The notes under the pieces: generated by a model
Told to the model about the DNA's origin: nothing
Seen by the model: the letters and a program-made list of their open reading frames with translations, nothing else
Databases searched by the model: none
Shown: one piece after another, positions 2,362 through 45,190 of the stretch
Layout: the number at the start of each line of letters is the position of its first letter
Numbering within the stretch: the stretch's first letter is position 1
Assembly (NCBI RefSeq): GCF_035594765.1
Contig: NC_085846.1
Coordinates: forward strand, 8,171,190-8,235,189
Reading direction: 5' to 3'
DNA from: Anolis carolinensis
Taxonomy: Eukaryota
Length of the DNA: 64,000 bases
Program-made: the position numbers and the translations under genes

Positions 2362-2366
2362 TATAA

Positions 2367-4211: not shown

Positions 4212-4401
4212 CAGGCATGGGCCAACTTGGGCCCTCCCTCCAGGTGTTTTGGACTGCAACTCCCACCATTCTTGACAGCCTCAGGCCCCTTCCTTTTCCC
4301 CCTCAGCCGCTTAAGCGGCTGAGGGGGAAAAGGAAGGGGCCTGAGGCTGTGAGGAATGGTGGGAGTTGAAATCCAAAACACCCTGAGGGCCAAAGTTTGG
4401 C
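4212..4401. mobile_element. Palindromic hAT-like MITE (centre cagccgcttaagcggctg); other copies at 8257-8454, 19850-19953, 33951-34064, 54574-54707 and 57237-57431
   Basis: caggcatgggc TIRs, near-perfect fold-back, multiple copies in the window. Confidence 0.8.
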
Positions 4402-5400: not shown

Positions 5401-5756
5401 CACTCAGCATGCATACAATCATAAAGTATTAGAATTGGAGGAGACCACGTGGGCCATCTAGTCCAACCCACTGCCATGTAGGAAAAGCACAATCAAAGTA
5501 CCCCCAACAGATGACCATCCAGCCTCTGTTTGAAAGTGTCCAAGGAAGGAGCTTCCACCACCCATTCATGTGGGCAAGCAGATAGTTTTTCTTTTCTTTT
5601 TGAAAGTTAATTGACAATTTAATAGACTTTAATAGATCGTTTTTATTATTAAATAAATGTAATAGATAGTTTTTTTGATGTTGTGAAATATGTTTTGTTG
5701 GTCTTTTATTGTGATTTGTTTTTTAATACTGTTTATCTGTATTATATTTTAATTTA

Positions 5757-7545: not shown

Positions 7546-8489
7546 GTGGGCAGAATGGTGTTTGTGGAGGACATTGGCCAGGCTCTCGGACATCTTTGGA
7601 GGCTTTTGAACAGAAACTGAGTGGCCATCTGTCAGGGCTGCTTTGAATGCAATTTTCCTGCTTCTTGGTTGGGGGTTGGACTGGATGGCCCACGAGGTCT
7701 CTTCCAGCTCATTATGATTGGACAGCATGATGTCAATCATGTAGCAAGTGGCTTTTCTATTGGCCAAGTTAGCATTTCTCACTAGACACTCTAATAGATG
7801 GAATTCCTTTTAGCCCAGCCTTTTCCCTCCAAGGCCATTTCAACCTGCAATTTTCTATTGGCCAGTGAAGCTAGTAACTCTAACGCTATTGGATGCTCGT
7901 TTAATGGCGCTAGCTTCTCTTTTTTCTTATTGGCTGCCTTTTTACTATAGTCTTCCACGATTGGCCAGACCAAATCTAAGCAGCGCTCTCTACATGATCA
8001 GGTTTCCCACTGCAGTTAGGAGAGTTGACCGTGTTGTGAAAAGGACAAATATCAATTAATAATTAATACTTAATTAACAATTAATGAGGATAAATAATTA
8101 ACAATATGGCCTCTTAGTCTAAATGGCAGGTCTGTATTTCTGAAACTTGATATGCTTTTGTGGCAAAGAACAAAATAAAGTGAGATAAATTGGAGTTTTT
8201 AGAATGTATTTATCCAAAAATATTTGAATAATAACAATAATGCAGAGAGAATAGGGCAGGCATGGGTGAACTTTGGCCCTCCGGGTGTTTTGGACTGCAA
8301 CTCCCAGCATTCCTAACAGCCTCAGGCCCTTTCCTTTTGCCCCTCAGCCGCTTAAGCGGCTGAGGGGCAAAAGGAAGGGGCCTGAGGCTGTTAGGAATGC
8401 TGGGAGTTGCAGTCCAAAACACATGGATGGAAGGCCCAAGTTTGCCCATGCCTGCTCTACACTGTCGAAATACTTTCCTGTCCATGGGG

Positions 8490-9745
8490 ACTCCAAGATC
8501 TTTTTCATATATCCTGCTGTCATATCAGGCATCCCCCATTCTGTCTCTTTACATTTCATTTTTTCTGCCTAAGGGAAGCTTTTTGCATTTGTCCTTGTTG
8601 AACTTTTGTTAGTTTCGGCCAATTTCTCTCGAGTCTGTTGGGATCGTTTTGAATTCTGCTCCTGTCTTCTGCAGTATTGGCTCTCCCAATTTGGTGTCGT
8701 CTGCAAACTTGATGATCATGCCTTCTAACCCTTCATCTAAGTCAATGATGGGCAACCTTTTGCACTTGGTGTGTCAAAATTCACCAGAAACCTAACATGA
8801 CTTGGGTGGTGTGTCACTTTGAGAAAAAAAAACCCATAATTTTGCAATATGTATAGTTTAAATAACAAAAATGTATAATTGTAATGTATAACTGTATTTA
8901 ACAAATCAAAAACTATTTACTACAGTAGAGTCTCACTTATCCAAGCCTCGCTTATCCAAGCCTCTGGATAATCCAAGCCATTTTTGTAGTCAATGTTTTC
9001 AATATATCGTGATATTTTGGTGCTAAATTCGTAAATACAGTAATTACAACATAACATTACTATGTATTGAACTACTTTTTCTGTCAAATTTGTTGTCTAA
9101 CATGATGTTTTGGCGCTTAATTTGTAAAATCATAACCTAATTTGATGTTTAATAGGCTTTTCCTTAATGCTTCCTTATTATCCAACATATTTGCTTATCC
9201 AACATTCTGCCGGCCCGTTTATGTTGGATAAGTGAGACTCTACTGTATTTCCATGTACAACAATCTATGGTACCTCTTGCAGTTTCCACCCTGCTTTCTC
9301 TCTATTCTAGTTTCAATGTAGTCATGAATAATGAATAATAGAATAATAATATAATAGTAATAATATGATAAAATAATAATAGAATAATAATAGAATGATA
9401 TAATATATATATAAATGTAATGTGCATAATTCCCGTGGAGTAAACAACAAAACCACTGGACCAAATCACACCAAATTTGGCCACAAAAGACATAGTCACC
9501 CAATCAATCTGCATGCGGCAGCGTGTCAGCAAAAATGACTAGGCGTGTCAGTGCTGAGACGCGTGTCATAGGTTGGCCATCACTGATCTAAGTCATGAAT
9601 CAAGATCCTAAACAGAACCGGGCCCAGGACAGAACCCTGCTTATGGCACTCCATTCATCACTTCTTTCCAGGATGAAGAGGAAGCATTGGGGAGAATCAC
9701 CTTTCGGTTTGTTCACTTAACTAATTACAGATCCACCTAGCCTAG
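8490..9745 (-). mobile_element. CR1 LINE fragment interrupted by a hAT element
   Basis: Reverse-strand CR1 RT sequence (KFADDTKLG, QGSVLGPVLF) on both sides of the 8743-9585 insertion. Confidence 0.75.
8743..9585 (+). mobile_element. Non-autonomous hAT transposon with 8-bp TSD ATCTAAGT, containing a mariner-like MITE (8923-9245)
   Basis: TIRs caatgatgggcaacct / aggttggccatcactg; TSD at 8735-8742 and 9586-9593. Confidence 0.9.
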
Positions 9746-10169
9746 TTTTGCCTAGGCTGAGGCTGAGGCTAAAAGGCTTGTGATAGAATTGGCAGATGAG
9801 GAAGGCATTCCATAACTCCGGCTCCAGACACTGTTTATAAATCCTTTGTTAATAACGTTCCCCAGGAGAGGAGTCGCTTTGGGAGTTTCATCTCGCATAA
9901 TGTTTTGTGGCAATGTCTGCCAGTTCAGGAGTTTCACTAATATGGAGACTAAGAATAGAGGCTTAAGGTGCCTCTCCAAGGCAAAAGCGGAGAGTGAAAG
10001 GCCCCATGAGGTAATCTGGATTCAGAAACCGGGTTGTATGACAGTGTAGATCCATTCAGAGAAAGAAACAGGATTATAAAAGTGGCTGAAACAGTGGGAT
10101 GGTAGAGCATTAACTGGGACTTCCCTGCCAAATGGAACCTTTTGGACCAAACTAGAATGCTCAGGATGG

Positions 10170-10490
10170 ATTTACATTGCCATATAATCCAGTTTCCGAA
10201 TCCAGATTATCTGCTTTGAACTGCATTATATGAGTCCACACTGCCATATAAGATAGTTCAAAGGAGATATTGTGGATTCAGAAACTGAATTATATGGCAG
10301 TATATTTATCTGACTTGGATTATATGGCAGTGCCTTTATCTGAGGCCCCTTCTACACTGCCATATAGTCCAGATTGTCAAATCAGATAACCAACATTATC
10401 TGCTTTGAATTGAATTATGTGAGTCTACATTGCAATATAATCTGGTTCAAAGCAGATGATCTGGATTTTATATGGCAGTGTAGAAGGGAT
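10170..10490. mobile_element. PIF/Harbinger-like palindromic MITEs (ggccccttctacactgcc family); also ~27000-27365, 58305-58447 and 59006-59503
   Basis: Fold-back copies; 3-bp TSD TCA seen at 59423-59425 and 59504-59506. Confidence 0.65.
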
Positions 10491-10529
10491 CCGATTGAAA
10501 GTCAAAGGATGCATCTACACTGTAGAATT

Positions 10530-10915
10530 TGTCAGAGTAATTTGCAGCGCAGCAGCAGTTGGATGGAATCAGTGGAACACAGAACGAAGTGACACCAAGA
10601 CTTTAGTAAAACTATATACAAAGTTTTACTGTAAGCAGTAATAATCAAGACAAACAGACTTGCAGACAAACACAGGACTTGACTTTCACTCTAGGCAGAC
10701 AGCACTCAACTCAGAACGGATGCAATCAGTAATGCACACATACTTGTGTCTGGACACTCCTCCCTGGTTCCAGCCACACATCAAGGTCATCACAGCTTCT
10801 TAGTAATTAACTCTTTCCAAACTATAGTACACTCTGGATGATGCAATCAGTATGCAATACAGACAAGACACAAATTTCATTTAAACACTACCAATACACA
10901 AATCCCACATAAACA
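10530..10915 (-). mobile_element. Solo LTR (TG...CA, 386 bp) inserted in a palindromic MITE
   Basis: TG/CA ends, 5-bp TSD gaatt/gaaat; the host MITE continues on both sides; orientation tentative. Confidence 0.6.
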
Positions 10916-11371
10916 GAAATTAAGGCAGTTTGACCCCACTTTCACTGCCATGGCTCGATGTTATGGAATCCTGGGAGCCGTAGTTTGGTGAGGCCCCAGT
11001 CCTCTTTGTCAGAGAAGTCTGAAGACCTTGCCATACTACAGCTCCCAGGATTCCAAAGCATTGAGTTGTAGTAGTTAAAGTGGTGTCGAACTGCATTACG
11101 TCTATAGTGTAGATTCAACTGAAGTCAGCTAAGAAGGCAGGAGGAAGCCATGCTCTCCTCCAAATATTTAATAGCCCTTGATAATACGTTATTGAGTGAT
11201 ATTGACTTTGCCAGGGCTATTAAGGCAACCCTTTGTCCAAACTGCAACATTAGAAGCATAAAATGAATTTAATTGAGTGATTCATGGTTATATAACCCAA
11301 ACCTCCGAAGTTTATGACTGTTTCTCTTACAGCCACCTTTCCTGGAGAGGAAACTGATAGAAAGAAAACTC

Positions 11372-12085
11372 TGGATGCATCCACACTAGAATTAATGCAG
11401 TTTGACACCACTTTTGCCACACTGGCTCAGTGCTATGGGGCCGTGGGAGTTGTCATTTTCCAAGGTCTTCTGCCTTCTCTACAAAGAGTGCTGATGCTTC
11501 AACAGTATCTTCCAGGTTAGCACTGACCATGGCAGCAAAAGTGAAGTCAAACTGCATTTATTCTCAAGTGTAGATGCACCCACCATTGGATTTGTTCTTT
11601 AGGGGCTCAGCTCTGCCTTTGCCTGTGAGCGATAGCAGAACATTGGTGAAAGTGCTGGAATGCTTCTCCGCTGTAGACCATCTGCTGCATCACTGACCAC
11701 AAATAAAGCTTACCTTACAGTGATAATGTGCCTCCATGTTCAGGACTGAATGGAGTCTTGGTGAGGCCTGGAACTGAGCCCAGTTTCAGAACAGAGCTCT
11801 GTATGTGGGTAGATGGGTGGGGGTTATGTTTGGATCAGAAAGATGGAATAAATGTGAGTAGGAGGTATTTTTCAGATGTCGCTTCAAATTAAGGAAGGCA
11901 GATTGAATTCGGGGTGCATCTATATTGCAAAATTAATGCAGTTTGGGGAGGCTGTAGTCTGGGGAGGCACCAGCACTCTTTAGCAGAGAAGGCCAAAGAT
12001 GTTGTAAAACTTCGACTCAATTCCATCACATTGAGCCATGCCAGTTAAAGTGGTGTCAAACTGCATTAATTCTACCATTTAGATC
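11372..12085. mobile_element. Harbinger-like MITEs (gggtgcatctacactgtagaatta family); also 10508-11115, 17890-18112, 18720-18900, 60729-61190 and 62749-62968
   Basis: Palindromic ~210-bp copies; TTA TSD around the 62.7-kb copy. Confidence 0.65.
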
Positions 12086-12199
12086 AGTCAGTCAGTCTGT
12101 GATAAGGTCCATTCCTAGGCATGGATGGGCAGACTGGCACATCTCAGTTTAAATTAGGGCTGATGAATAAAGTGCATGGGTCAGATAAGTAGGGCAAAA

Positions 12200-12932
12200 T
12201 AAGATGGGGAAAATAAACTTAGGGCGGAAAACAACAGTAAAGTGCCAGGACAGATTTCAAATCTTAATAGGAGCCAGGTTGTTAGGGGATTGTCTGATCA
12301 AATGCACATCGGAACATCCATTTTTTAGATCTTTACGGAAGATAGAGCAGGTGGGTGCTAGCCTAATCTCCCCATGAAGGGAATTCCAGAGTCGGGGAGC
12401 CACCACAGAGAAGGCCCCCTCCTGCGTCCTCACCAGCCTTGCTTGTGATGGGGAGGAAGCAAGAGAAGAGCCTCCCCAGGAGATCTTAGAGATCACACAG
12501 GTTCATAGGGGAAGACGCGGTCACGAAGATAGGCTGGTCCCGAACCATTTAGGGCTTTCTAGGTGTTAACCTGCACCTTGAATTGGGACCAGAAACTTAT
12601 CGGCAGCCAGTGGAGCTGTAACTGGCTCCTGTTCAAAGCCTGGCTGCTGATCTTTGAACCAGTTGTAGTTTCCGAGCCGTCTTCAAAGGCAGCCCCATGT
12701 AGAGTACATTACAGTAGTCCAGTCTGGAGGTAACTAAAGCATGGGCCACCTTGGTCAAGTCAGACTTCTTGAGGTACGGTCACAGCTGGTGCACAAGCTT
12801 TAATTGTGCAAAGGCCCTCCCAGCCACTGCCATCACCTGAGCCTCAAGCGTCAGTGCTGAATCTAGGAGGACCCCCAGACTGCGGACCTGTGTCTTCAAG
12901 GGAGTGTAACCACACTGAGCACAGGTTGCCAC
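12200..12932 (-). mobile_element. L2 LINE 3' fragment
   Basis: Collinear with 42160-42830 of the intact L2, with deletions. Confidence 0.85.
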
Positions 12933-14687
12933 AGCAGACACAAGCAGACACAAACGTAATAGAAGCCGAGTGAGAAGCTATGGCAATGGCAGCCTTGAGA
13001 TCTTTCAGGAGCGTAATTGAATATAGGGGAGTGATGTGATGTGGTTGCCTTTCCTCCTCCCTTTCTGTTTACAGAGATGGAGCGAGAATAAAGCCATAAG
13101 CCCATTTAACCCTTTTGTTCTGGCCCAAGCGATGAGGCAGGCGGGGAGGGGATCTTAAGGGGATGGAGAGTGCACCAGGCCTGATCCATTATTCATGACC
13201 GGATGCCTGCAGTTTTCTCGATAATTCATATACACAGAGACGCTCTTGGGCACCTGGTTAACACGGCACGAAGCCAAGAAAACATCTCCGCCGTGGTGAA
13301 AAACTCCATCTCTTCTCCCACTGATGGGTTTCCACTTTCCTTCCAAGTCCTATTGGTTGTCTGTCTTGCCGGTTTTTAATATTCATTATTTTCCCCCTTC
13401 TTATATCCTAATATCCCAGTTTGGGGTTGCCATTTCCAATCTGTTTCAGATCTCACCCGCTGCCCCTTTCCCTGACCAGTGTGAGGCATTTGGCTTTCTG
13501 GCTCTCTCATAATCCATTAGTTCCATTTTCTCTCCTGAATAATTCATCCCTCCCCTTTGGAAATCTCTTTAAACATGTCTTCCTTTTTGGGTACATCGTG
13601 TCCTTGGCACCTGGAAGGGGGTGAGGTGTCCTTTTGCTCAGTGTTAATAAAAGCTCCAGGTTTCTGGACACAAAGACTTTCCCATTTGCTTAGGTCTCGC
13701 CATCTGGCCTTGGTTGCTAATCCCTAGGAGAGCTCTTCCTTGGAGCAGCATCTGGAAGGGCCAGGAGATTTGAAGGAGCAGCTACTCTAATAATTATGGT
13801 AATATCTGAGTCACCTTTGCCTGGACCACATTGAATATGAAGCTAGCAAGCCAGTGAGCTGGGGAGCTATCCAAAAAGGAGTGCAAGGGGTAAACAGCCT
13901 CTTTCCTGAGAGAGACAAGAGAGGAAATATCTAGGATGCATTGACGTGGAAGTATTGCAATCGCCAAATGAGAAGAGGAGGAAGACTCCATGGAGATAGT
14001 CCTCCTGTATAGAGAATGTCTGCATTTCTATTATTATAAGTCAGTCGAGTAGAGTGAAAGGAAATGAGACAAGCAGATAGGAGACCTCACTGACCAAGTA
14101 CTAGAAGGCAGGAGAGCGGAAAAGATAAACGGAGGCCACCCCGTTGGATCAATACAGCCAGACAACAGCACGGATGGAATAGTAATAAAAGACACCGTGT
14201 TTCCAAAAGGCACAGCGACAGAATGAAAAAATAAGACAGAAGGGAGGGGAATCGCCAAAAGGAAAAAAAGACAACGGAGACGTAGAGCAAAAGCTCAGCT
14301 TGGCTGGATCGGCTGATGGAAACCAACACGTTCACTAAGCTGGTGAAGGGACAGCAAGAACAAAAGTGATCCACAGACGAACTCAAAATCCTGCAGACCA
14401 TTTGAAGGGTGGTGCAGACAGAACCATCGGCAGCAATGGTGTGACGAGAGAGACTACCAGACATCCAAAGACTGAGAAGCAGAAGGGGATTGCCAAGGTG
14501 GAGCATCCTTTTCCTCCCCAAATGGAACCATAGGACTCTTCATCCCAGGCAGAAGGAGCAGCTCTGACTGGCAGACAGAAAAATAACTCTTCACTTGATT
14601 CTTTCGGCTGCAGGGTCAGAAGGTGAATCTTGCCCTGCTTGGACTGTGTCAAAATAGCCAAGAGCTACTAAGGACACCAGCTTCTCC

Positions 14688-15140
14688 ATGGCCTGTGCCC
14701 CACCATCACCTCTCACCCCTGGCAATATCCCCCGCAACCTCAGCTACATCGCAGGCCTCTATGAGCGTGCCTACTACCGCACCGCCCGCCCAAGCCTGGC
14801 CGAGGACTCGGGCACCGAAGGCTCTGAATCGGAGTCGGAGGGCAGGCCCCGGAGCCGGCCACGCAGGCGCCGGCACCTCTTTGGGGGCCCCAAGAGGAGG
14901 GGAAGGCGCCGGACCCGCTCGGCCCCAGCCCGGGGCAGGAGCAGGGGGCCCTCACGAAGCCGCAGCCCAGGGACACGCAAGAGGGTCCGCTTCGCCGACT
15001 CCCTGGGCCTCGAGTTGACCAGCGTCCGGCAGTTCTGGCCCAACGATCTTCCACAAGTGCCGGAGCGTGTCCACACCCAGCTGAGGCGGGATTCACTCAG
15101 CCATTTCGCCCCTTGCCTGCCTTTTTGCCCACCAGTAAAG
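14688..15140 (+). CDS. PPP1R3E: PPP1R3E coding exon 1 (PP1 glycogen-targeting subunit)
   Basis: IPRNLSYIAGLYERAYYR N-terminus, RVxF motif KRVRFADSLGLEL, AAG|GTAATG donor, phase 0. Confidence 0.93.
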
Positions 15141-16372
15141 GTAATGGTGTTATCTGGGGGAGGGAGGGATGAATTCGGGATTGCATTGGGAGGTGGTGTA
15201 AATTGAAAAAGAGAGGAGGAAGACCTTTTCCCACAATTTCCAGGCTCCTTCATGGGCCCTACTGTCTTGGATATTCTGGGACATATTACTATATATGTGT
15301 GTGTGGTGTTTCCTTCTTTGGAGGTTTTTAAGCAGAGGCTGAACGGCCATCTGTCAGGAGGGCTTTGATTGTGTGTTCTTGCACTGCAGGGGGCTGGAAT
15401 GGATGACCCTTGGGTCTCTTCCAATGCTATGATTCTATGATTATACATATACACAGATGATTATATAAATTCCTGTTCCAATAGTCTAGAAGCCTTAGTT
15501 CCATATTCATTCATTTGTACAAGACAAAAACTGTCATCTCCAACTGTCCCAATTAGTATTCTGTTGTCCCACTTTTTAGCTGCTCTTAAAATGCCCTAGC
15601 TTCTCTCTCTTCCTTTCACTTCAGTCTTCGTCCTCAGCTTATTTTATCTGCTGCAAAGAGCAAAAGTAGTTTGTGCTTGGTTATCCCAGAAGAAGAAACA
15701 GGAGCGGAGAAGTTAGAATCTTGCCTTTCCTATATGGTTAAGGCAATCGCTTCAGTCTCTCCTAGATTGACTGTTCTTCCCTCCTAACAGGGAAGTTCTA
15801 GTGCTTCCCCAAGCTGCAAATCCTACAATAGCCATGGCATTTAAAGTGGCATCAAAACGCTTTAATTGCACTGTTTGACAGAATAATTTTTATGTGCCTC
15901 TATTGACCACGTGGGGATGCTGTTGTAACCTAGGTTCTGTGAAACCAAAATGAAGACCTTAAGATAATTTCCCAAACTTCTAGGATTTCTGCAGTATTCT
16001 TTTTTGCTCTAGAATGCCCAATGTTGAGTAACATTTCACCAAACCTGTTTTTTTAGACTCAAGTTGACATCCCAGAGATTTCAGGACATTTCAGGATTGA
16101 ATCCATTTTGCATGAATGCAACTGTAAGGATTGCAACCGGTATCCACCAACTTTACTTTAATTGAGAAGATAGGCAAGATCATTCTTATCAAAGGGTCTG
16201 ATATTTCTGCTGTTTAATGCCAAATGCCTTAAATATTTACTAATCTATACCTACATCTGAAATGTTAGCATGTATCAGAAACAAAATTAACTCATAAGAT
16301 ATCCAGTAAACCTGGATCATCCAAATGTCAAAAATGTCAAATGAGATATAAAATGTATAAAAATTTCATATA

Positions 16373-16691
16373 CAGTAGAGTCTCACTTATCCAAGCTAAA
16401 TGGGCCGGCAGAAGCTTGGATAAGCGAATATCTTGTATAATAAGGAGGGATTAAGAAAAAGCCTATTAAACATCAAATTAGGTTATGATTTTACAAATTA
16501 AGTGCCAAAACATCATGCTATACAACAAATTTAACAGAAAAAGTAGTTCAATACGCAGTAATGTTATGTTGTAATTACGGTATTTACGAATTTAGCACCA
16601 AAATATCATGATATATTGAAAACATTGACTACAAAAATGGCTTGGATAATCCAGAAGTTTGGATAAGCGAGGCTTGGATAAGTAAGACTGT
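16373..16691 (-). mobile_element. Tc1/mariner-like MITE in the PPP1R3E intron
   Basis: TIR cagtagagtctcacttatccaa, TA flanks; same family as 8923-9245. Confidence 0.85.
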
Positions 16692-17244
16692 ATAATCCAG
16701 AGTTTTGAAATGTTATTCATTGTGTATTGATTTTACCCCTTATTATCCTACTCCCTTTAGATATTATTATAACCACTGTTTTACTTTTAATAACATTTCT
16801 CTAATTCATAAATGCAACAGATGACATTTGCCCCCATCGTCACTGTGAAAAAGTAATAAGCAAGTCCCAGTCTTTCTGGAAATTGGTCATGGATTTTTCC
16901 TTGATCAGCAGCGTCGGTTTGTCTGTCTCAGCGAAATCTCAGATCTTCATTGGCCATTCTTCTTACATTGGGATAACTGCCATAGTTCCTTTCATTTCTG
17001 TGCATATATGATTCTTGCTACAGTTATCATATACTGCATTGTAGTAATCTTCCATGTTTCTAGGTGGTCATCCAGCATTCCTGAACATTCCTGACTCCAA
17101 CCTTAACATCTTTTGCCATCATATGTATTTGAGTCCAATATTTCTGGGCCCTTTTTGGGCTAGTAAAATTAAAGGAACTTTGCCATTTCTCGCTTAGGGC
17201 CTGTTTTCAAGTTCTGATCCTCTCCCTGTCATTTCTCTTCCCAG

Positions 17245-17724
17245 GATCCTTTGAGCCTTCAGTGCCTGCTAGAACCCACCTTCCTGGATCCCCTAAGCAT
17301 GCCGGATTTCTCCCAACGCCTCCTGGCCCAATGTGTGTTGCTGGAAGGAGCCCGTGCCGAGGGATCCTGTGTATCCGGCACCATCCGGGTGCTCAACTTG
17401 GCCTATGAGAAACGGGTCTCCGTCCGTTACACATGGGACTACTGGGCCACCAAGCATGATGCCCGGGCCTCCTACGCCGCCCCTGCGGGACGGGGCCGAG
17501 ACCATGCCGACCGCTTTGCCTTCCGTTTGCTGCTGCCCGTCCCGCTCCCTCCAGGGGTCTTTCTGGAGTTTGCCCTGTGCTACCTGGTGGGTGGGAAGGA
17601 GTTTTGGGACAACAACGAAGGTCGAAACTATTCCTTCCGTCCCCCACCTTGTGTGGATGAGGAAGAGGAGCCTCCCAGTCCCACTCAGGATTGCTGTGAG
17701 ACGGGATGGATACACTTCCTCTAA
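17245..17724 (+). CDS. PPP1R3E: PPP1R3E coding exon 2 (CBM21 glycogen-binding domain)
   Basis: Pyrimidine tract plus CAG acceptor, in frame. GTIRVLNLAYEKRVSVRY, FWDNNEGRNY and the GWIHFL* terminus are typical of PPP1R3E; total 310 aa. Confidence 0.94.
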   Translation, partial: DPLSLQCLLEPTFLDPLSMPDFSQRLLAQCVLLEGARAEGSCVSGTIRVLNLAYEKRVSVRYTWDYWATKHDARASYAAPAGRGRDHADRFAFRLLLPVPLPPGVFLEFALCYLVGGKEFWDNNEGRNYSFRPPPCVDEEEEPPSPTQDCCETGWIHFL

Positions 17725-23869: not shown

Positions 23870-24116
23870 CTCCCCGTCCTCTGCCTCTCTCTTTCCCCAC
23901 CTCCAACCCCCTCTCCTCCTCCTCCTCCTCCTCCTCCCTCCATCTCTCCTTCTCTCCCTCCATCCAAATTCCTTTCTCCCCTCCTCTCTTTCTGTTCAGA
24001 TCCCTCCTTCTTTTCCCTCCGACGGAGAAAGAAAGAAAGAAGAAAGAGCGGGGGTGCCTGTGCTCGCTCCGAAGAGACAGACCTCCCACTGCCCTCATTC
24101 CCAAAACTTCCCTCAG
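23870..24116 (+). promoter_or_regulatory. Candidate promoter / non-coding first exon of the TWSG-like gene
   Basis: Long pyrimidine tract, local CpGs, CAG|GTAAAC donor at 24117; the next exon at 26660 starts with an acceptor and 5'UTR. Confidence 0.4.
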
Positions 24117-25134
24117 GTAAACTTTTTCAGGTTTAACATTCCTTCCAATTGAGATCGGGCCCGAGGAGGGGGGGGAGCAAAATTTTTATGTAGCCATCAG
24201 ACATCTAGCTTCCCTCCTCCCATCCTTTATTACAGCAGGGGATTTGGATTAGTTCGATTTTGGGGGGAATTGTATCTCTGATCCGACATTTCTGATCCAA
24301 ACTTTGATGGGCAGGAGGGGGTTGTTTCTATACCGAAGCCCTTTTCTCGCCCCCAGGAATGAGTCCTTAGTTACTACTTGTTTTATTCCACCAGAAAGGC
24401 CGCTATGCGGTGGAACAATTTGCAACACCCCCAAGGACAGAACATATAATATAATAACAACAGAGTATTTCAACATCCTGAAGACCTTTGTTAGGGCATT
24501 TGCTTTAGGACAAGAAGTTAGGGAAAGTGGAAGTTTATGTGAGGATCTAAACATGTGAAATCTTTCAGGATAGGTGCATTTAGTGCCTTTAATTCCAGGT
24601 ATATTCACCCAGAATAGTTACTTACACCTCCACCTCTATTTTGTGATTGATTCATTGTTACTAACGCTAGGGGAGTTCACACCTCTGTAATTATCTGCTC
24701 AGCAAAACCACTTTCTTCAATACTGATTTGAAATTGCATTAAATGGTCAGTGTAGATGGGGCCTTAGGCTTCCCTTACATATCTATAAGCTAGCTGGCAT
24801 TGCCCCCCTCCCATGTGCGATGGGAAGTTGCTGCCAATTGCGAGAGAAATAAGGCTGAACACTGTGAAAGCCACCCACTGTATGGCTATTAGCCTCCTCC
24901 CAGTAGACTTAAATCAAGGAAAAGCTTCATGAGAACCACCACTCTTCTTCATGTTGCTCCACCAACAGCAAGAATATCCCTGTGGGCAGCAAAATCAGGC
25001 AATCCCAACTGGATGGCCCCCCAGGAGGGCCTTCCTTCAGTTGACCAAGAATTGGCAACTTGGAAGTCCCTGAAGAGACTCAGAAGCAAGTTGGCAGATC
25101 CAAAGACAACCTGGCAAAGTGACACTACCTAGAG

Positions 25135-25943
25135 CAATGATGGGCAACCTTTTGCACTTGGTGTGTCAAAATTCACCAAATAAAACTTAGCATGACTTGG
25201 GTGGTGTGTCACTTTGAGAGAGAGAAAAACCATAATTTTGCAATATTTATAGTTTAAATAACAAAAATATATAATTGTAATATATAACTGTATTTAATAA
25301 ACCAAAAACTATTGACTACCATTATTTCCATGTACAACAATCTATGGTACCTCTTGCAGCTTCCACGCTGATTTCTCTCTATTCTGGTTTCAATGTAGTC
25401 ATGAATAATAAATAATATAATAATAATATAATAGTAATAATATGATAATATACTACAATAATAATAGACTAATAATAGAATGATATAATTTTATACACAC
25501 ACACACACACGTATTGCACAAGGTGGAGGATTCCTCTAGGTCAGTGATGGCCAACCTATGACACATGTGTCAACACTGACACGCCTAGCCATTTTTGCTG
25601 ACACGCTACTACATGCAGATTGATTGGGTGACTATGTATTTTGTGGCCAAATTTGGTGTGATTTGGTCCAGTAGTTTTGTTGTTTACTTCATGGGAATTA
25701 TGCACATTACATTTATGTATATATATATACACACACACGTATGTGTGTGTGTGTATATATATATATACATAAATGTAATGTGCATAATTCCCATGAAGTA
25801 AACAACAAAACTACTGGACCAAATCACACCAAATTTGGCCACAAAATACATAGTCACCCAATCAATCTGCATGTAGTAGCGTGTCAGCAAAAATGGCTAG
25901 GCGTGTCAGTGTTGACACATGTGTCATAGGTTGGCCATCACTG
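25135..25943 (+). mobile_element. Non-autonomous hAT transposon (same family as 8743-9585) with 8-bp TSD ACCTAGAG
   Basis: TIRs as in the first copy; TSD at 25127-25134 and 25944-25951. Confidence 0.9.
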
Positions 25944-25971
25944 ACCTAGAGGAATCCTCCACCTTGTGCAA
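25514..25971. repeat. Near-perfect 458-bp palindrome (fold-back inverted duplication)
   Basis: 25514-25738 is the reverse complement of 25742-25971, apart from microsatellite length. Confidence 0.92.
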
Positions 25972-26691
25972 CTGTGGAGCAGAACCAACAACTTAGCATC
26001 TCTATGCTTACCCAGTATTTATTTATTTACAGTATTTATATTCCACCCATCCCACCCCGAAGGGGACACAGGGCGGATCACATTGCACATATAAGGCAAA
26101 CATTCAATGCCTTAGCATAGAACAGAGACAGATGCAGGCACAAGCTGGCCTCGAACTCATGACCTCTTGGTCAGAGTGATTTGTTGCAGCTGGCTGCTAA
26201 CCAGCCTGCACCATAGCCCAGCCACTATGCCCTGTCTCATGCCCAGATGAAGAACTGTTTAAAGCTACAGACAATGCCGTTGCTGTTGCCCGTTTTTGGT
26301 CTAAAACTATTTAGCAGCTTGTGATCGCTTTATTTTTTATCACTTTTAAACTTATCTATTTATGCAATGCTTTTGACATGAAATAAACATTTAAAAAAAG
26401 ATCTTGACACTCGCCATAGCTTATATAACAAACAAGTGGATCTCCACAAATTATTGGACTAAAACTCCTATTATCCTATGCTGGCTAGAGTTGATGGCAA
26501 CATGCCCGCCCCCAAAGTTGCCCTCTGCTATTTTAGTGCCATAAAACACATTTAAAAGTAGTAAAAGGTAGCAGTCAAGTTAAGCTTTTGAGGGACTATG
26601 AAGCCTCAATTGTAATTGATCAGAATGGAAACTTTCCTTTGATTTTGTTTCTCTCTTAGGTGTATCTACCCTGTCCCCAAACACCACAGCA

Positions 26692-26805
26692 ATGCCTCAT
26701 GGCATGAGCTTGCTTTTGGTGGCAGTGACGTGGGCCGTGGCCTCCCCTGCCGACACTTGCAATAAAGCCCTCTGTGCCAGTGATGTCAGCAAATGTCTGC
26801 TGCAG
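26692..26805 (+). CDS. Twisted gastrulation (TWSG1-like) paralogue, coding exon 1: signal peptide and start of N-terminal Cys-rich domain
   Basis: MPHGMSLLLVAVTWAVASPADTCNKALCASDVSKCLLQ; acceptor before 26660, CAG|GTAAG donor. CNKALCASDVSKCL is the Tsg signature. Confidence 0.93.
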
Positions 26806-27766
26806 GTAAGATCCCAGAGATAAAAGCAAGATACTAAATAGTACTAGTATTACTACTAACAAAAATAATACAAAAAGCATTTTTGAGGCATGCTTCTTAA
26901 ACCTCCAAGTTAAAGTAGGTAATTCACATAAAATGGAGAATAATTAGCACCATTTTGGACTGAGCAGGACTGATATTGTATGTTTTTGGAAGATAATTTC
27001 AGCCCCTTCCACACTGCCCTATATCCCAGAATCCCAGATTTTCTGCTTTGAACTGGATTATATGAGTCTACACTGCCAGATAAGCAAATAATCTGGGATC
27101 AGATCCTGGGATATATAATGTAGATCCAGCCACCTACTTTTGTGGAGTTAATATTTTCTGTTGCTGAATTGAATTAACCATTGCTCTGAGTTTTGAGTTT
27201 GGTCGTACTGATAAACTCAGGCCCCTTCTACACTGCCCTATAAGATCCAAATTATCTGCTTTGAACTGGATTATGTGGCAGTGTAGACTAATATAGTCCA
27301 GTCCAAAGCAGATAATGTGGATTATTGTCTTTGATAATCTGGATTATTTGGCAGTGTAGAAGGAACCTTAGTTTCTTCTTGCAGAGATCCAGTGGGACAA
27401 CTAACCCTTGCATCTTTGCACTGGGTGAAACTCTATGATCCAACTATATCCAAAGATGGGACCAAATCTTTCATCCATAGGTCACTGTAAAGACCCTAAT
27501 GGAAAGAGACAGTAGATAGCCTTCTGCTTGGGAACTATGCAGTTTCTTGTTCATCCTTGTTTTCACCCTTTTAGAAATTAGGTGCCCTTTGTTGTTGTTA
27601 TTGTTGTTGTTGTTGTTATCGTGAAACAGTTAGAACATAGAATTCAAAGGCATAGTTGTGTTAGTCTGGATCAGTACACAAAAGGATTTTGGAGCACCCT
27701 TGATTTGGTGGCTTTCATAGAGTGCATCCACACTGTAGAATTCATGCAGGATTTCTTTTTTGGCAG

Positions 27767-27866
27767 GAAGTGTGCCAGTGTGAAGCAAACCGTGCTGGCT
27801 GCCCATGCTGTCGGGAATGTGCCTTTTGTTTGGGCAACCTCTGGGAGACTTGCTGTGATTGTGTGG
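27767..27866 (+). CDS. TWSG1-like coding exon 2
   Basis: 100-nt AG/GT exon EVCQCEANRAGCPCCRECAFCLGNLWETCCDCV(G), with the same Cys spacing as TWSG1. Confidence 0.93.
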
Positions 27867-28344
27867 GTAAGGAATATCCAAGGACAGTGGCATGCTCCTC
27901 CTCCTTGTCTACTGAGGGATTCTGAGAGTTGTTATCCAAAACAGAAAGCTGTGCTGCTGCTTGGGGACATCAGAGCTCACATCCCATACTCACATTCCAA
28001 ACAAGCAAAGTGTTCCAGAATAAAAGCGAGGATTGTCAGATCAGAATGATCTCAGACTATGAGATTTCAGGTCATAACCTGGACCCTGGGGGCAACCCCT
28101 CATGATACCACAAAAGGCCAGTACCTTTTGTGTTCAAAGGGGTAGTTTCTGGTGTTGTGACCTGAGGGGTATTGTGGCCTGAGCATACATTTTCAAATTA
28201 GATGATTTGCAAAAAAAAAAAAATTGAGATTGTCTCTTGCGTAGAGATTTCACCACCTCACTCAGGATCATGGGAAGTAGACCAGGCTTTGAGTGCTAGC
28301 AGCCTTACCGAGGAAGGATTCTGACTTGACTTTTTCCTCCTGAG

Positions 28345-28560
28345 GGCTCTGTGATGAACGCCCTCTCTCAGCCCCTCGCCCAGCCCAGCGAAGCTCCATG
28401 CACAACCTGATGTCACCCGTGCCCTCTCTCTTCCGGGCACTCACAGCCATCTCCGACAATGAGTCTCCCATGGGCTGGAGCATCTTGACTCTGCCAGTTG
28501 AGGAGGAGCTGAGACAGAACCATGTAGAGACAGACCATCTCTTGCTGGGGCCACACACAG
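28345..28560 (+). CDS. TWSG1-like coding exon 3
   Basis: (G)LCDERPLSAPRPAQRSSMHNLMSPVPSLFRALTAISDNESPMGWSILTLPVEEEL...; PSLFRALT and W..L.LPV.EEL are Tsg motifs; CAG|GTAAGT donor. Confidence 0.88.
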
Positions 28561-28680
28561 GTAAGTATAACCTGTGCAGAGGAGAGAGCATTGATGTTGG
28601 AATAAGATTCCAGGCGATTCAAAAAGTGAAGGAAGAATACGAGCGATACACAACCATGAACTTTCCCTTTCTTTTTGCAG

Positions 28681-28901
28681 GCTTGGTTCTCCCAGATGCT
28701 GAAGGCCTCAATGCCACCGCACCACCTTGCCAGTCCATTTTCTTCAACGAGTGCCTATCCATGAGCCGATGCCGGACAGCTTGCCAGTCGGTGGGAGCCT
28801 GGCGCTACCGCTGGTTCCACAATGCCTGCTGCCAGTGTGTAGGGCCTGACTGCCGGGGCTATGGTGGAGCCCAAGCAATTTGTTCCAACTGCCGGGATTA
28901 A
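28681..28901 (+). CDS. TWSG1-like coding exon 4 (C-terminal Tsg domain)
   Basis: CQSIFFNECLSMSRCRTACQSVGAWRYRWFHNACCQCVGPDCRGYGGAQAICSNCRD*; YRWFHNACC motif. Spliced CDS is 651 nt = 216 aa. Confidence 0.93.
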
Positions 28902-29088
28902 CTCACCATTTTTATCTTTATATGTACATGTACACATACAGATCCACATATGCAGTGCCTTCAACAACCTACCTACCTATTTACCTCTCTCTCCCACCTT
29001 CCCTTTCTTCCTATTCCTAGTGTTGTGAGCAAGACTAGTCCAATACATTTTTGCTACCCAAAGTGCTAAAGCCACCCAAGTGCTGAAG

Positions 29089-29930
29089 GATCCCTGTAGT
29101 CACATAGGAAGAATCTCTCTTCAGATCTTTCCCCAGTCCTGAACTTTCAGAACTTTCCAAGCCTATTGCTTCCTATGGACCCATGTACAGATTGTCGGAC
29201 TGCCTATCTCCTTTTTTAATAATAAATAAATAGTTTTGTCTGTAGGTTTTGTATTTCAGTTGTGAAATTCCAAGATGCCCTTGGTCCTGTGTATCCGAGG
29301 GCTGTGCATCCACAGATTCAACTAACAAAGTATTGGTTCTCAAACTGCTATCCTTCCGATGTTTGGAACTTCAAGTCCTGATATTCCTGAGCATCAGTCT
29401 TGAACTACCATAATCCCTTAGCCAGCATTATAATCTAATAAAGTAACTGCTTGAGGCTCTTCTCCCCTCTCTTATATAGAATATCTTGACTGTTTATGTT
29501 CTGCTTCCTGATCTAATCTTATAGGCAAGTTCTCCTGGTGGCTTTCATCTGCTCCCCATAGATGTGCCATAGGGAACAGAGAATTCATTTCATTGGCTTT
29601 GGCAGCATTGGGATACTGTACCTAGCAAAGATCCCTGTAGCCATATAGGAAGATTCTCTATTCAGATCTTTCCCCAGTCCTGAAGTTTCTGAACTTTCCA
29701 AGCCCATTGCTTTCTATGGACCCATGTACAGATTGTCGGACTGCCTATCTCCCTTTTTAACAATAAATAGTTTTGTCTGTATGTTGTGTAAGTCAACTGT
29801 TAAATTCCAAGATACAGTTGGTCTTGTGTATCCAAAGGTTATACATCCACAGATTCCACTAACAAAGCATTGGTTCTCAAACTGCCATCCTTCAGATGTT
29901 TGGAACTTCAAGTCTTGATATTCCTGAGCA
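29089..29930 (+). repeat. Diverged direct duplication (~300 bp; 29089-29393 and 29630-29930) containing the TWSG-like poly(A) signal
   Basis: Both copies begin gatccctgtag and end gatattcctgagca; AATAAA at 29221 and 29762. Confidence 0.85.
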
Positions 29931-37042: not shown

Positions 37043-38506
37043 ATGCCCCCCAACAAGGATGCCCCAGGCTGCCTTGGCTCACCCCCAGGCTTGATCTGCT
37101 TGCCCCCCATATCTGAGGATCTCCAGTTGGTGTGGACCCAGGCGGCACAAACAAGTGATCTCGACAACAACCAGCATTTGCTGCAAACATTTAGCTACTT
37201 CCCCTATCCCAGCCTTTCTGATCTGGCCTTGCTCTGCCTGCGTCATGGTCTGCACATGGAGAAAGTCAAGGCCTGGTTCATGGCACAGCGCCTTCGCTGT
37301 GGCATTAGCTGGAGTGCTGAGGAGATTGAAGAGACTCGGGCACGGCTGATTTACCATCAGGATCAGCTTCACTTTAGTTGCCTGCTTGCTGGGAACGACG
37401 TTGACCCCTGGCACCAATCTTTTAAAAGTCAGGAGTGTCACCAACTGTTACCTCCCTCTGTGTACTGCTCAAACAAATATCCAGAGAACCAGCAAACTTC
37501 TATAGATTCTTTAAACAACTGCAGCCCAGCCCAAGGAAAAGAGGAGGTTGAGAGAATCACTCAGGATATTTGGAAACTGAAGAAAAATGCTTTGTCCAAC
37601 CACAGCAGGGCTCAGGAGAACTACGAACCTTTAGGGGCCTCTACACATCTTCACAATACCAAAGAGGCACCTTCTGGTGCTTATCTACCTACCACATCTG
37701 CCAGTCTGGGCCATAAGTACGAGAACTCTCACAGTGTCACATGGGGACTTCCTGCAGCCTCCATGCATCCAGCTGACCCTGTTGTGTCTGCAGTAAATGG
37801 TGGGCATCACCCAGGGATTTTTTCAGCAGGTTCTTCTATCAAAGCTACCCCATCTTTGTCTACAACTACAACTAGTGGTATTGACTCATCTAACCCTCAA
37901 AATTATCAGTACAGTACGGGAGACCAGCAGCATCCTTCAGGTTGCTTCTCAGACACTCTTCGCAGAACTAGGCGAAAGACAAAGGAACAGTTGGATGTGT
38001 TAAAGTCTTTCTTCCTTCGTCACCAGTGGGCCCGGAGAGAGGATTATCATCAACTGGAGAAGATCACTGGACTACCACGTGCTGAGATCATCCAGTGGTT
38101 TGGAGACACTCGTTATGCACTAAAACATGGTCAGCTGAAGTGGTTTCGGGACAATGCAGGGCAGAGTCCAGAGTCTGTCTCCTCACTGCCTCCTCATCCA
38201 CTTCAAAGCAACCATCCAGACACAAGTCCACTGGAGCGCTATTGGACAAACCATCTACAATTGCAAGAGCATGATTTACCAGCACTCTGTCACGAGTCAG
38301 GTATGGATGCTGAACAGGTGATACAATGGTTCAATTCACACTCACCTGCCCCATGTGAAGTAGAAGTATGCTTGAGTGAGGAAGAAGAAGTAGATGAGGA
38401 GGTGGCAGCCCATATGACAAAATATGACTATGAAGACTATGAAGAAGAAGAAGAAGATGAGGATGAAAATGCTGATGATGATGATGATGAAGATTGGGTT
38501 GCCTAA
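37043..38506 (+). CDS. HOMEZ: HOMEZ homeobox and leucine zipper protein (ZHX family), 487 aa, single coding exon
   Basis: MPPNK...LICLPPISEDLQLVWTQAAQTS...WFMAQRLRCGISW (HD1), RKTKEQLDVLKSFF...QWFGDTRYALKHG (HD2), LERYW...VIQWF (HD3), acidic tail; acceptor at 36988-36989. Confidence 0.96.
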   Translation: MPPNKDAPGCLGSPPGLICLPPISEDLQLVWTQAAQTSDLDNNQHLLQTFSYFPYPSLSDLALLCLRHGLHMEKVKAWFMAQRLRCGISWSAEEIEETRARLIYHQDQLHFSCLLAGNDVDPWHQSFKSQECHQLLPPSVYCSNKYPENQQTSIDSLNNCSPAQGKEEVERITQDIWKLKKNALSNHSRAQENYEPLGASTHLHNTKEAPSGAYLPTTSASLGHKYENSHSVTWGLPAASMHPADPVVSAVNGGHHPGIFSAGSSIKATPSLSTTTTSGIDSSNPQNYQYSTGDQQHPSGCFSDTLRRTRRKTKEQLDVLKSFFLRHQWARREDYHQLEKITGLPRAEIIQWFGDTRYALKHGQLKWFRDNAGQSPESVSSLPPHPLQSNHPDTSPLERYWTNHLQLQEHDLPALCHESGMDAEQVIQWFNSHSPAPCEVEVCLSEEEEVDEEVAAHMTKYDYEDYEEEEEDEDENADDDDDEDWVA

Positions 38507-41828: not shown

Positions 41829-44800
41829 TAATAATAATAATAATAATAAAACTTTATTTATACCCCGCCACCATCTCCCCTATGGGGACTCGGGGCGGCT
41901 TACATGGGGCCATGCCCAGACACCATACAATATAACAAAATAAACAGCAAATCATAACACAATATAACAGTGCAAAATCATCGTATATATATTACAACCC
42001 AAATCGGAGAAAACAATGAAAACCAGGGCAGGCCACATGATCACTTAATTAAAAACTCAGGAGAGAGAGACATAGGAATAAGGGGAAACAGGGAAATAAA
42101 ATGGTGAAGCAGTCTAAAGGATAAAAACCAAGGGGAATAGCCAGAGTAATATATTACATTTACTCCCCAAAGGCACATCGGAAAAGCCATGTTTTTAGAT
42201 CTTTCTTAAAGGCTAACAAGGTGGGGGCTTGCCTAATCTCAGTGGGCAATGAATTCCACAGTCGGGGGGCCACAGCAGAAAAAGCCCTCTCCCTCGTTCC
42301 CACAAGACGGGCCTGGGACAGAGGCAGTGGCGAAAGGAAGGCCTCCCCGGATGAACGAAGGGAACGAGCAGGTTTATGGTAGGAGATACGGTCCCTAAGG
42401 TAGGTGGGTCCCAAACCGTTTAGGGCTTTATAGATGATGGTCTGCACCTTGAATTGGGACCGGAAAGTGAACGGCAGCCAGTGGAGCTCTTTAAACAGGG
42501 GGGTAGATCGTTCCCTGTAGCTCGCCCCTGTTATTAATCTGGCTGCCGAGCGCTGGACCAATTGTAGTTTCCGGGCCGTCTTCAAGGGAAGCCCCACGTA
42601 GAGCGCATTACAGTAGTCCAGTCTAGAGGTAACTAAGGCATGCACCACCGTGGTCAAGTCAGACTTCACGAGGTATGGTCGCAGTTGGCGCACAAGTTTG
42701 AGTTGTGCGAAAGCCCTCCCGGCCACCGCCGACACCTGAGCCTCAAGCGTCAACGCTGAATCCAGGAGGACCCCCAAACTGCGGGCCTGTGATTTCAGGG
42801 GGAGTGCAACCCCGTCCAGCACAGGTTGCCACCCAATACCCCGATCAGATGGGCGACTGACCAGGAGGGCCTCTGTCTTGTCAGGATTGATCCTCAGCTT
42901 GTTCCTCCTCATCCAGTCCGCCACAGCGGCCAGGCACTGGTTCAGAATCCGAGGGGCTTCCTTGGAGTTAGATGGAAATGAGTAGTGGATTTGCGTGTCA
43001 TCTGCGTAGAGATGGCAACACCCTCCAAAACTCCGGATGACCTCTCCCAACGGTTTCATGTAGATGTTAAATAGCATGGGGGATAAAATAGACCCTTGCG
43101 GGACCCCACAGGTCAATGGCCAGGGGTCCGAGCAGGTATCCCCCAGCTTCACCATCTGGGAACGACCCTCCAGGAAGGACCGGAGCCACTGCAGAACCAT
43201 GCCACCGAGCCCCATCCCGGCGAGCCTCCCCAGAAGGATACCATGGTCGATGGTATCGAAAGCCGCTGAGATGTCCAAGAGAACCAGCAGGGTCACACTC
43301 CCCCTGTCCAGCTCCCTGCGGAGGTCATCCACCAAGGCGACCAGAGCCGTCTCGGTACTGTGCCCAGGCCTGAAGCCAGACTGCGAGCGGTCCAGAAAAT
43401 CAGTGTCATCGAGAAATTCCTGGAGCTGTGTGGCAACCACCCGCTCCAGAACCTTGCCCAAAAACGGGAGGTTGGAGATTGGTCTGTAGTTGTTACAAAT
43501 AGATGGATCAAGCGAAGGCTTTTTTAGTAGTGGTTTTACTACCGCCTGCTTAAAGTAGGATGGAACCGACCCCTGAACCAAAGAAGCATTTATTATGGTC
43601 ACAAACCAATCCAACAACCCATCTTTGGCCAGCTTGACCAGCCAAGAGGGACAAGGATCCAGAGCGCAGGTGGTCGCCCTCACAGACCCAAGAATCCCCT
43701 CCACGTCATCAGGAAGAACAAGCCGGAAAGAATCCCATAAGATCGAGCAGACAGGTACCTCGGTTACCTCCGCTGAGACCACAATTGAGCTGGAGTCTAG
43801 CTCAAGGCGTATCTGAGCAACTTTGCCTGCAAAGTGGTGCGCGAAATCGCTGCACCCAGTTGCCAAGTCATTGGGAAGCCCCTGGGCCTCAGGAGGCCGC
43901 AGGAGCTCCCCCACAACTCGGAACAACTCCGATGGCCTGTTGGCTGCAGACGCTATGCGGGCAGTCGTGAAAACTTTCCTGGCTGCTCGCAGAGCCACGG
44001 AGTACGCCTTAATAGCGGCTTTAGCCCGTGCTTGGTCGGACACGTCCCGAGATTTCCTCCAGATGCACTCTAGTCCCCTCCTCCTACGCTTCATCACAGC
44101 CAACTCCTCGGTAAACCAAGGAGTCGACGCGACTCTACGCAGTGAGAGGGGACGTTCGGGAGCGATCGTGTCCAATGCCCTTGATAGCTCACTATTATAG
44201 CGATCAACCAGGACATCGACAGGATCGCCAGTCTCCAGGACAGGAAGATCCCCAAGAGACCTCAGAAGTCCATCCAGATCCATCAGTCTCCTGGGGCGGA
44301 CCATCTTAATGGGTCCACCACCCCTGCGGAGGTTAGAAGGCACGGCGATACTTAAACAGATCAGATGATGGTCAGACCATGACAATGGAAGAATATTTTG
44401 CTCTTCCACTCTGACTGTCCCACCGTCCACAACAAAAACAAGGTCCAAGGTGTGTCCTGCCTGATGTGTGGGCCCTGATATAACTTGAGACAGCCCCATG
44501 GTTGTCATGGCAACCATGAAATCCTGAGCTGCACCTGTCAATGTGGACTCGGCATGAATGTTAAAGTCTCCCAAAACTATCAGTTGTTGGGAGACAAGGG
44601 CCGCATTGGAGACCACATCTGCTAGCTCGGACAGAGAGACTGCTGGGTCGCGGGGTGGACGGTACACCAACAGAATCCCCAAGCTGTCTCGGGCTCCCAC
44701 CTTCAGGAAGACGCAGTCGAACCTCGGGGATTGTGGAACGGCGCATCTGATCAGGGCGATGGACTGCCGAAAGATCACCGCAACTCCTCCTCCCCGCCCC

Positions 44801-45190
44801 CCAACTCTGGCCTGTTGATGCACCCCGAAACCAGGAGGACACAGCTGAGTAAGATTCACACCTCCCAGCTCATCCAGCCATGTCTCGGTGATGCATGCCA
44901 GATCTGCTCCCTCATCCAGGATCAAATCCTGGATGACAGCTGTTTTACCATTGACAGATCTGGCGTTCAAAAGCAGGACCTTAAGGTTGGGGGGTCTGTC
45001 CTGAAGACTACCACACTTAATCCTCTCCAGGGTCGCAAAAACTCTGTTGCGCTTCTCCCTGGGTTGGTGGCGACCATGCTTTCTCCTCCCCCATATCACC
45101 TCAATGGAGCCACCTCCAATCAAGCCCTCCTCCCCCTGATGGAAGAACTGGGCGGAATTGCCAGTTGCCGGGACTAGTCAACTGTCCTGG
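41829..45190 (-). mobile_element. L2-clade LINE with complete ORF2, apparently 5'-truncated, (TTA)n tail, inside an RNF212B intron
   Basis: Open 987-codon frame, 3' stem-loop region gccgccccgagtcccc...ggcggggtataaat, and short tandem tail; 5' boundary approximate. Confidence 0.92.
42160..45123 (-). CDS. L2 ORF2: APE endonuclease plus reverse transcriptase
   Basis: EN motifs LLLNARS, ITETWL, LGDFNIH, WSDHHL; RT motifs NYRPISNL, QSGFRPGHST, LDISAAFD, GVPQGS, LYADD; no stops or frameshifts. Confidence 0.93.
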   Translation of the reverse strand: MIGGGSIEVIWGRRKHGRHQPREKRNRVFATLERIKCGSLQDRPPNLKVLLLNARSVNGKTAVIQDLILDEGADLACITETWLDELGGVNLTQLCPPGFGVHQQARVGGRGGGVAVIFRQSIALIRCAVPQSPRFDCVFLKVGARDSLGILLVYRPPRDPAVSLSELADVVSNAALVSQQLIVLGDFNIHAESTLTGAAQDFMVAMTTMGLSQVISGPTHQAGHTLDLVFVVDGGTVRVEEQNILPLSWSDHHLICLSIAVPSNLRRGGGPIKMVRPRRLMDLDGLLRSLGDLPVLETGDPVDVLVDRYNSELSRALDTIAPERPLSLRRVASTPWFTEELAVMKRRRRGLECIWRKSRDVSDQARAKAAIKAYSVALRAARKVFTTARIASAANRPSELFRVVGELLRPPEAQGLPNDLATGCSDFAHHFAGKVAQIRLELDSSSIVVSAEVTEVPVCSILWDSFRLVLPDDVEGILGSVRATTCALDPCPSWLVKLAKDGLLDWFVTIINASLVQGSVPSYFKQAVVKPLLKKPSLDPSICNNYRPISNLPFLGKVLERVVATQLQEFLDDTDFLDRSQSGFRPGHSTETALVALVDDLRRELDRGSVTLLVLLDISAAFDTIDHGILLGRLAGMGLGGMVLQWLRSFLEGRSQMVKLGDTCSDPWPLTCGVPQGSILSPMLFNIYMKPLGEVIRSFGGCCHLYADDTQIHYSFPSNSKEAPRILNQCLAAVADWMRRNKLRINPDKTEALLVSRPSDRGIGWQPVLDGVALPLKSQARSLGVLLDSALTLEAQVSAVAGRAFAQLKLVRQLRPYLVKSDLTTVVHALVTSRLDYCNALYVGLPLKTARKLQLVQRSAARLITGASYRERSTPLFKELHWLPFTFRSQFKVQTIIYKALNGLGPTYLRDRISYHKPARSLRSSGEAFLSPLPLSQARLVGTRERAFSAVAPRLWNSLPTEIRQAPTLLAFKKDLKTWLFRCAFGE

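Follow-up and report, generated by a model that had tools for sequence, protein, structure and literature searches.

Amniotes are usually regarded as having a single Twisted gastrulation (Tsg) gene. The green anole, Anolis carolinensis, carries a Tsg gene between PPP1R3E and HOMEZ, and the question is which member of the family this is, how old it is and what its product may do. The window, i.e. the whole stretch of 64,000 nucleotides that was analysed, contains PABPN1 (-), PPP1R3E (+), the Tsg gene (+), HOMEZ (+) and RNF212B (-), in this order. This gene block is that of human 14q11.2, which is not known to have a Tsg gene; TWSG1 itself is on human 18p with ANKRD12 and RALBP1 as its neighbours. 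The initial annotation, made from the sequence letters, had read the anole gene as an intact second Tsg paralogue. As described below, sequence comparison identifies it as the squamate orthologue of Xenopus twsg2, and we refer to it by this name.

Gene structure, transcripts and current annotation

The gene has four coding exons with AG acceptors and, at the three internal donors, GT (local frame check). The introns between them are 961, 478 and 120 nt long, in phases 0, 1 and 1, respectively (Table 1). The open reading frame that starts at 26692 encodes 216 aa and has a single terminal stop and no internal stop; a second in-frame ATG is found in coding exon 1 at 26704. The 24 cysteines, arranged as 14 + 10, can be aligned to those of human TWSG1, and the N-terminal leader of 22 aa has a hydrophobic core (mean 2.5 over 9 residues) and is a putative signal peptide. 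Searches were run with single exons or with the stop-free genomic stretch 28347-28898, and later with the database's own Anolis protein. Taken singly, each exon exceeded the gathering score of Pfam Tsg_N or Tsg, and the annotated Anolis protein matched Tsg_N (PF23782, 1e-22) and the C-terminal Tsg domain (PF04668, 8e-40). The window sequence does not contain any N. The frame check and the exon-by-exon Pfam matches agree with the initial annotation in that there are four AG/GT exons, an intact frame of 216 aa, 14 + 10 cysteines and no lesions, and all the motifs it quoted (including PSLFRALT and YRWFHNACC) are present. Its exon count holds for the coding part, but it did not list a fifth, non-coding 5' exon that ends at 24116.

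Table 1. Position of the exons of the Tsg gene and of its flanking genes in the window.
Feature	Position	Strand	Content
PPP1R3E, upstream neighbour, two coding exons	14688..17724	+	CBM_21 1e-26; both exons match the frog gene
5' non-coding exon	23944..24116	+	start approximate, deduced from upstream transcript length
Coding exon 1	26660..26805	+	ATG 26692, putative signal peptide of ~22 aa, predicted BMP-binding helix, first three Cys; Tsg_N 5e-6
Coding exon 2	27767..27866	+	remainder of Cys-rich N-terminal domain, including Trp67 equivalent; Tsg_N 1e-9
Coding exon 3	28345..28560	+	predicted Chordin-binding helix (Leu103/Leu107 equivalents), Trp116 strand; Tsg 3e-7
Last exon, coding part	28681..28901	+	linker with N-glycan sequon, ten-Cys C-terminal domain, TAA; Tsg 1e-26
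3' UTR	28902..29930	+	end approximate; duplication with a period of ~540 nt; AATAAA at 29221, 29437 and 29762
HOMEZ, downstream neighbour, main coding exon	37043..38506	+	Pfam Homez and homeodomains

The 3' part of the gene is present in 18 public runs from seven studies. Four of the runs, each from a different study, have one contig that joins all four coding exons, leaving GT..AG gaps of exactly 961, 478 and 120 nt. These contigs have no mismatches, and there is no depth over unique intron sequence. The pattern is that of spliced mRNA, the runs themselves being only presumed to be RNA. Two of the spliced contigs extend upstream, and their loose ends match 24085-24114, which is followed by AG|GT at 24115-24118; one of the extended contigs has 171 letters before 26658. 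At the other end, contig coverage of the 3' UTR reaches at least 29500, with a joint that "goes back 412".

Pairwise dN/dS values between Anolis, Podarcis, Gekko and Python are 0.06-0.12 at dS values of 0.67-1.3 (about 193 codons). The gene is functional and under purifying selection; a pseudogene is ruled out by the open frame, the spliced transcripts and dN/dS values well below 1. Expression and purifying selection, both of which the initial reading called for, are found in the contigs of four studies and in the dN/dS values.

A few further features of the locus can be mentioned. The third coding intron (28561-28680) is in frame and stop-free, so that its retention would add 40 aa to the linker; it is spliced out in all four runs examined. 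The duplication in the 3' UTR extends over 29086-29930, its units are 88-89% identical with an AATAAA in each, and both units are present in transcript contigs. Within the 5' UTR intron there is a perfect inverted repeat (25514-25971, 225-nt arms, 8-nt spacer) flanked by an AT/AC microsatellite, which is either a foldback element of recent origin or an artefact of the assembly.

When translated, each of the exons is contained letter for letter in the A. carolinensis proteins XP_008121138.1/XP_062813626.1 (RefSeq) and H9GCL3 (UniRef), i.e. the gene is already annotated. The names given to it in the databases are "twisted gastrulation protein homolog 1" and "Twisted gastrulation BMP signaling modulator 1". 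The copies of other squamates are named "1-like" or "1-B-like" while the Anolis copy carries the plain TWSG1 name, a case of hidden paralogy in annotation. The Tsg family, its mechanism, the Xenopus orthologue and the class of ohnologues that reptiles have kept but mammals and birds have lost are known already; our literature search returned no paper that names twsg2 or ties the squamate gene to it.

Orthology, distribution and genomic neighbourhood

The window protein and whale TWSG1 share 45% of residues in the mature region, and 37% at non-Cys sites. The TWSG1 proteins of lizards (92-95%), turtle (98%), bird (99%) and bamboo shark (83%) are far closer to the whale protein in the same region. 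The initial annotation had noticed a strong divergence from TWSG1 at non-Cys positions, with human TWSG1 as its reference, and the identity values agree with it. Trees were built under LG+G4 (45 rows) and under a mixture model (25 rows), with echinoderm and fly Tsg as outgroups. In both models the Anolis copy falls into one clade, with a support of 100/99, together with copies from Xenopus, coelacanth, lungfish, salamander, sturgeon and sharks, the sharks being the first branch within the clade in both trees. The Xenopus members are X. tropicalis NP_001015756.1 and X. laevis NP_001088758.1, "twisted gastrulation homolog 2", and it is by these database names that the second Xenopus Tsg is equated with twsg2. 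A separate TWSG1 clade (88/99 and 100/99, respectively) contains TWSG1 from shark, fish, frog and amniotes. The duplicates of teleosts, twsg1a and twsg1b, which had been proposed for inclusion in such a tree, fall within this second clade, so twsg1b is not the orthologue. Forcing the squamate copies to group with amniote TWSG1 was rejected by the AU test (p-AU 5.8e-8), which rejects both a TWSG1 orthologue and a squamate-specific duplicate. Both genes are present in Pogona, Podarcis, Gekko and Rhineura, with an identity of 43-46% between the two. Thamnophis, Crotalus and other squamates likewise carry twsg2 as well as TWSG1, and several snakes are found in both clusters. The reading of the gene as a paralogue orthologous to the second Xenopus Tsg is thus borne out under two models.

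Since both clades are represented in sharks, the duplication is older than the split of sharks and bony vertebrates. All copies examined, and also Pogona TWSG1, have the first two coding introns at identical residues, which shows that the duplication occurred at the DNA level and excludes a retrocopy. The third intron lies in the variable linker, and its distance from the C-terminal domain differs. The lamprey protein groups with the twsg2 clade at 96/84 under LG+G4 and at 83/28 under the mixture model, and the placement of hagfish Tsg is also unstable; because of this the tree does not separate 1R, 2R and a segmental duplication.

Close relatives of the window protein were found in lizards (geckos among them), snakes, frogs, salamanders, lungfish, coelacanth, sturgeon, paddlefish and sharks, with dozens of squamates among the carriers of twsg2. 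A profile of the twsg2 clade gave 285-372 bits for full-length members and at most 269 bits for TWSG1 and lamprey proteins, and all named proteins of mammals, birds, crocodilians, turtles and teleosts were classed as TWSG1. Three protein searches and this classification, all on annotated proteins, found no member in mammals, birds, crocodilians or turtles. This distribution, which comes from annotated protein sets and not from genomes, suggests that the gene was lost independently in mammals, in turtles together with archosaurs, and in teleosts. The genomic region in question assembles poorly in birds. The initial annotation had proposed a gene kept in squamates, giving reptiles an extra Tsg, and lost in mammals. 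The pattern is there in the annotated proteins, but "reptiles" is too wide, as among amniotes only squamates have twsg2 in these sets. The reading as a whole is supported and extended, i.e. this is an ancient paralogue that is carried by amphibians, lungfish, coelacanth, sharks, sturgeon and paddlefish as well. The search of representative sequences also returned an unnamed, invertebrate-like Tsg of 335 aa with two C-terminal Tsg domains in tandem; long proteins with multiple matches in the same search were Ig repeats and were discarded as spurious.

The position between PPP1R3E and HOMEZ was given correctly from the start, as both genes were found on the same strand by their CBM_21 and Homez domains, respectively. 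The order in the frog Spea is BCL2L2-PABPN1 (-), PPP1R3E (+), Tsg (+) and HOMEZ (+). PPP1R3E, Tsg and HOMEZ are in order in gecko and python, and PPP1R3E is upstream of Tsg in Podarcis. In the paddlefish Polyodon HOMEZ is downstream and NOP9 upstream, and no other gene was called in the 10-kb flanks of the shark and X. tropicalis Tsg genes. BCL2L2 (Bcl-w), which the initial annotation counted among the neighbours, was not found in the window: tblastn at E 0.05 gave no match in this gap-free sequence, 5016-14687 included. The frog locus differs in this respect, since BCL2L2 still adjoins PPP1R3E in Spea, where it lies between PABPN1 and PPP1R3E (positions 2628-3152 of the Spea piece; Pfam BH4 and Bcl-2). 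This is also the arrangement in human, and BCL2L2 may have been lost or moved in the Anolis lizard. In the RNF212B region of the window a LINE ORF2 lies on the reverse strand (42160-45123); its open frame of 987 aa has domains of an endonuclease and a reverse transcriptase.

The predicted protein compared to known Tsg proteins

In the structure of human TWSG1 with GDF5, helix 1 fills the type I receptor site with Ile40 as a hydrophobic finger, and makes further contacts through Lys28, Ala32, Ser33, Asp34, Val35, Lys37 and Glu42 (PMC11167000). All seven of these further residues, as well as Trp67, are kept in the lizard protein. Leu is found at position 40 throughout the twsg2 clade; lamprey, echinoderms and some teleost TWSG1 have it as well. 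In the C-terminal domain, Leu103 and Leu107 are required for Chordin binding, and the Chordin patch also has Ile100, Leu114, Trp116, Phe172, Met176 and Met188 (bioRxiv 10.1101/2024.07.08.602551). The lizard protein keeps Leu103, Leu107, Trp116 and Phe172, and the changes in the rest of the patch are conservative (I100V, L114M, M176L and M188V). The glycan sites N52 and N81 of TWSG1 are absent; one sequon in the linker, near the N147 region, is conserved in the twsg2 clade. Glycosylation is said to matter for BMP binding, according to work cited in PMC5080453. The net charge of the mature protein is -5, as opposed to -11 to -16 in TWSG1. The predicted structure matches only TWSG1 crystal structures in the PDB (E 1e-17). 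The model has a pLDDT of 76 and is weak in the N-terminal domain, and for this reason it was used for fold identity only. As the residues for BMP and Chordin are kept, the protein most likely functions as an ordinary Tsg.

Xenopus twsg2 is one of the nearest known systems. It shares with the lizard gene the clade (100/99), the first two intron positions, Leu40 and other clade-diagnostic residues, and Spea shares the neighbours. The two proteins are only 53% identical in the mature region, and the frog protein differs from that of the lizard in still having the N52 sequon and in a tail at its C-terminus. When microinjected, the second Xenopus Tsg reportedly acted as the first did. Vertebrate TWSG1 (human structures 8BWA, 8BWI and 8BWL) has the 14 + 10 cysteines, both Pfam domains, the contact residues, the fold and the putative signal peptide in common with the window protein. 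The differences are the 45% identity, Ile40, the N52 and N81 sequons, the more acidic character, the other locus and the slower evolution of TWSG1. Teleosts with twsg1a and twsg1b also have two Tsg genes per genome, but these are of independent origin and nested in the TWSG1 clade. Drosophila, with tsg and crossveinless, is another case of two Tsg genes in one genome, there by a separate insect duplication.

The general features of twsg2 also resemble those of the "elusive" genes of reptiles, defined by presence in at least two reptiles and absence from mammal and bird genomes (PMC5901865). Ohnologues of this class such as FoxG2, Bmp16 and Pax10 are kept in squamates, amphibians and fishes and evolve faster than the retained paralogue. 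In the same way twsg2 was not found in mammals or birds, in its case among annotated proteins. No match to twsg2 by name or accession is present among the entries listed in the accessible part of Table S10 of Hara et al. 2018 (PMC5901865), nor among those listed in the accessible parts of the 2018 and 2023 supplements.

Origin, function and significance

We think it probable that the window gene is an intact, transcribed squamate twsg2 that split from TWSG1 before the divergence of sharks and bony vertebrates, most likely by whole-genome duplication, that was later lost in other lineages, and that works like TWSG1. The RefSeq and Ensembl/UniRef names imply a fast-evolving TWSG1 orthologue that has moved to this locus, and no second A. 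carolinensis Tsg appears among the cluster members or the matches listed. This reading is nevertheless hardly credible in view of the AU test, the frog synteny and the many squamates, from Pogona to Crotalus, that carry both genes. Given the date of the duplication and the known paralogon, we infer that the DNA-level duplication most likely took place in the early-vertebrate whole-genome duplications. Human 14q11.2 forms a paralogon with 8q/18, 16q and 20q (NFATC, SALL, TOX, CHD6-9, NDRG and JPH families). A local or segmental duplication or a transposition is a rather improbable source, even though the tree dates the split only to before the divergence of sharks and bony vertebrates, the third intron is at a differing distance from the C-terminal domain, and PPP1R3E/HOMEZ and ANKRD12/RALBP1 are not known to be mutual paralogues. 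Against it are the four-fold paralogon (14q11.2-8q/18-16q-20q, with TWSG1 on 18p) and the shared introns, which exclude a retrocopy. In addition, Tsg is directly downstream of HYDIN, a gene of human 16q, in two Lampetra assemblies (pieces 1-15509 and 1-15507), and this linkage fits the same paralogon. Later the gene would have been lost independently in mammals, in turtles, crocodilians and birds, and in most ray-finned fish.

On the side of function, the conserved contact residues make it most likely that twsg2, like TWSG1, is a tuner of BMP gradients that binds BMP as well as Chordin. Its N-terminal helix, once the protein is secreted, would plug the type I receptor site of BMP dimers, with Leu in place of the Ile40 finger, and its C-terminal domain would bind the vWC domains of Chordin-family proteins via Leu103 and Leu107. 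The resulting BMP-Tsg-Chordin complexes may inhibit or shuttle BMP, and the tissues or stages in which twsg2 acts would differ in part from those of TWSG1. It is also conceivable, though unlikely, that the ancient paralogue has diverged in function: it might bind Chordin well while its affinity for BMP is low or its choice of ligands different, acting mainly as a (pro-BMP) Chordin sink, or have a squamate-specific role fixed on the stem branch. This branch has 1.06 changes per site, as opposed to 0-0.11 on the branches to lizard tips, and at seven positions that are the same in every other Tsg group squamates have a fixed residue of their own, five of these positions being in the C-terminal domain; the long stem and these fixed changes leave room for a shift of function early in squamates. 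The change of Ile40 to Leu, the loss of the N52 and N81 sequons and the lower net charge point in the same direction. However, Leu40 also occurs in the lamprey, echinoderm and teleost proteins mentioned above, the remaining named contact residues are all kept, and elusive ohnologues are generally fast-evolving owing to their genomic location (PMC5901865). A wider version, in which twsg2 is an unrecognised ohnologue of all jawed vertebrates with at least three losses and a burst of change in squamates that fixed a new role, strikes us as quite doubtful. If true, the new role could consist in an altered BMP preference or chiefly in sequestering Chordin, possibly in squamate patterning or tail regeneration.

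The gene brings in no new kind of protein or mechanism. Lizards and snakes have two Tsg genes, and since the twsg2 of the green anole bears the TWSG1 name in RefSeq and UniRef, expression studies may be reading the wrong paralogue. The gene would add one more member of the BMP pathway to the ohnologues repeatedly lost from the 14q11-like region, and the TWSG1/twsg2 pair offers a natural test of how a Leu versus an Ile finger and the glycan sites affect the binding of BMP and Chordin.
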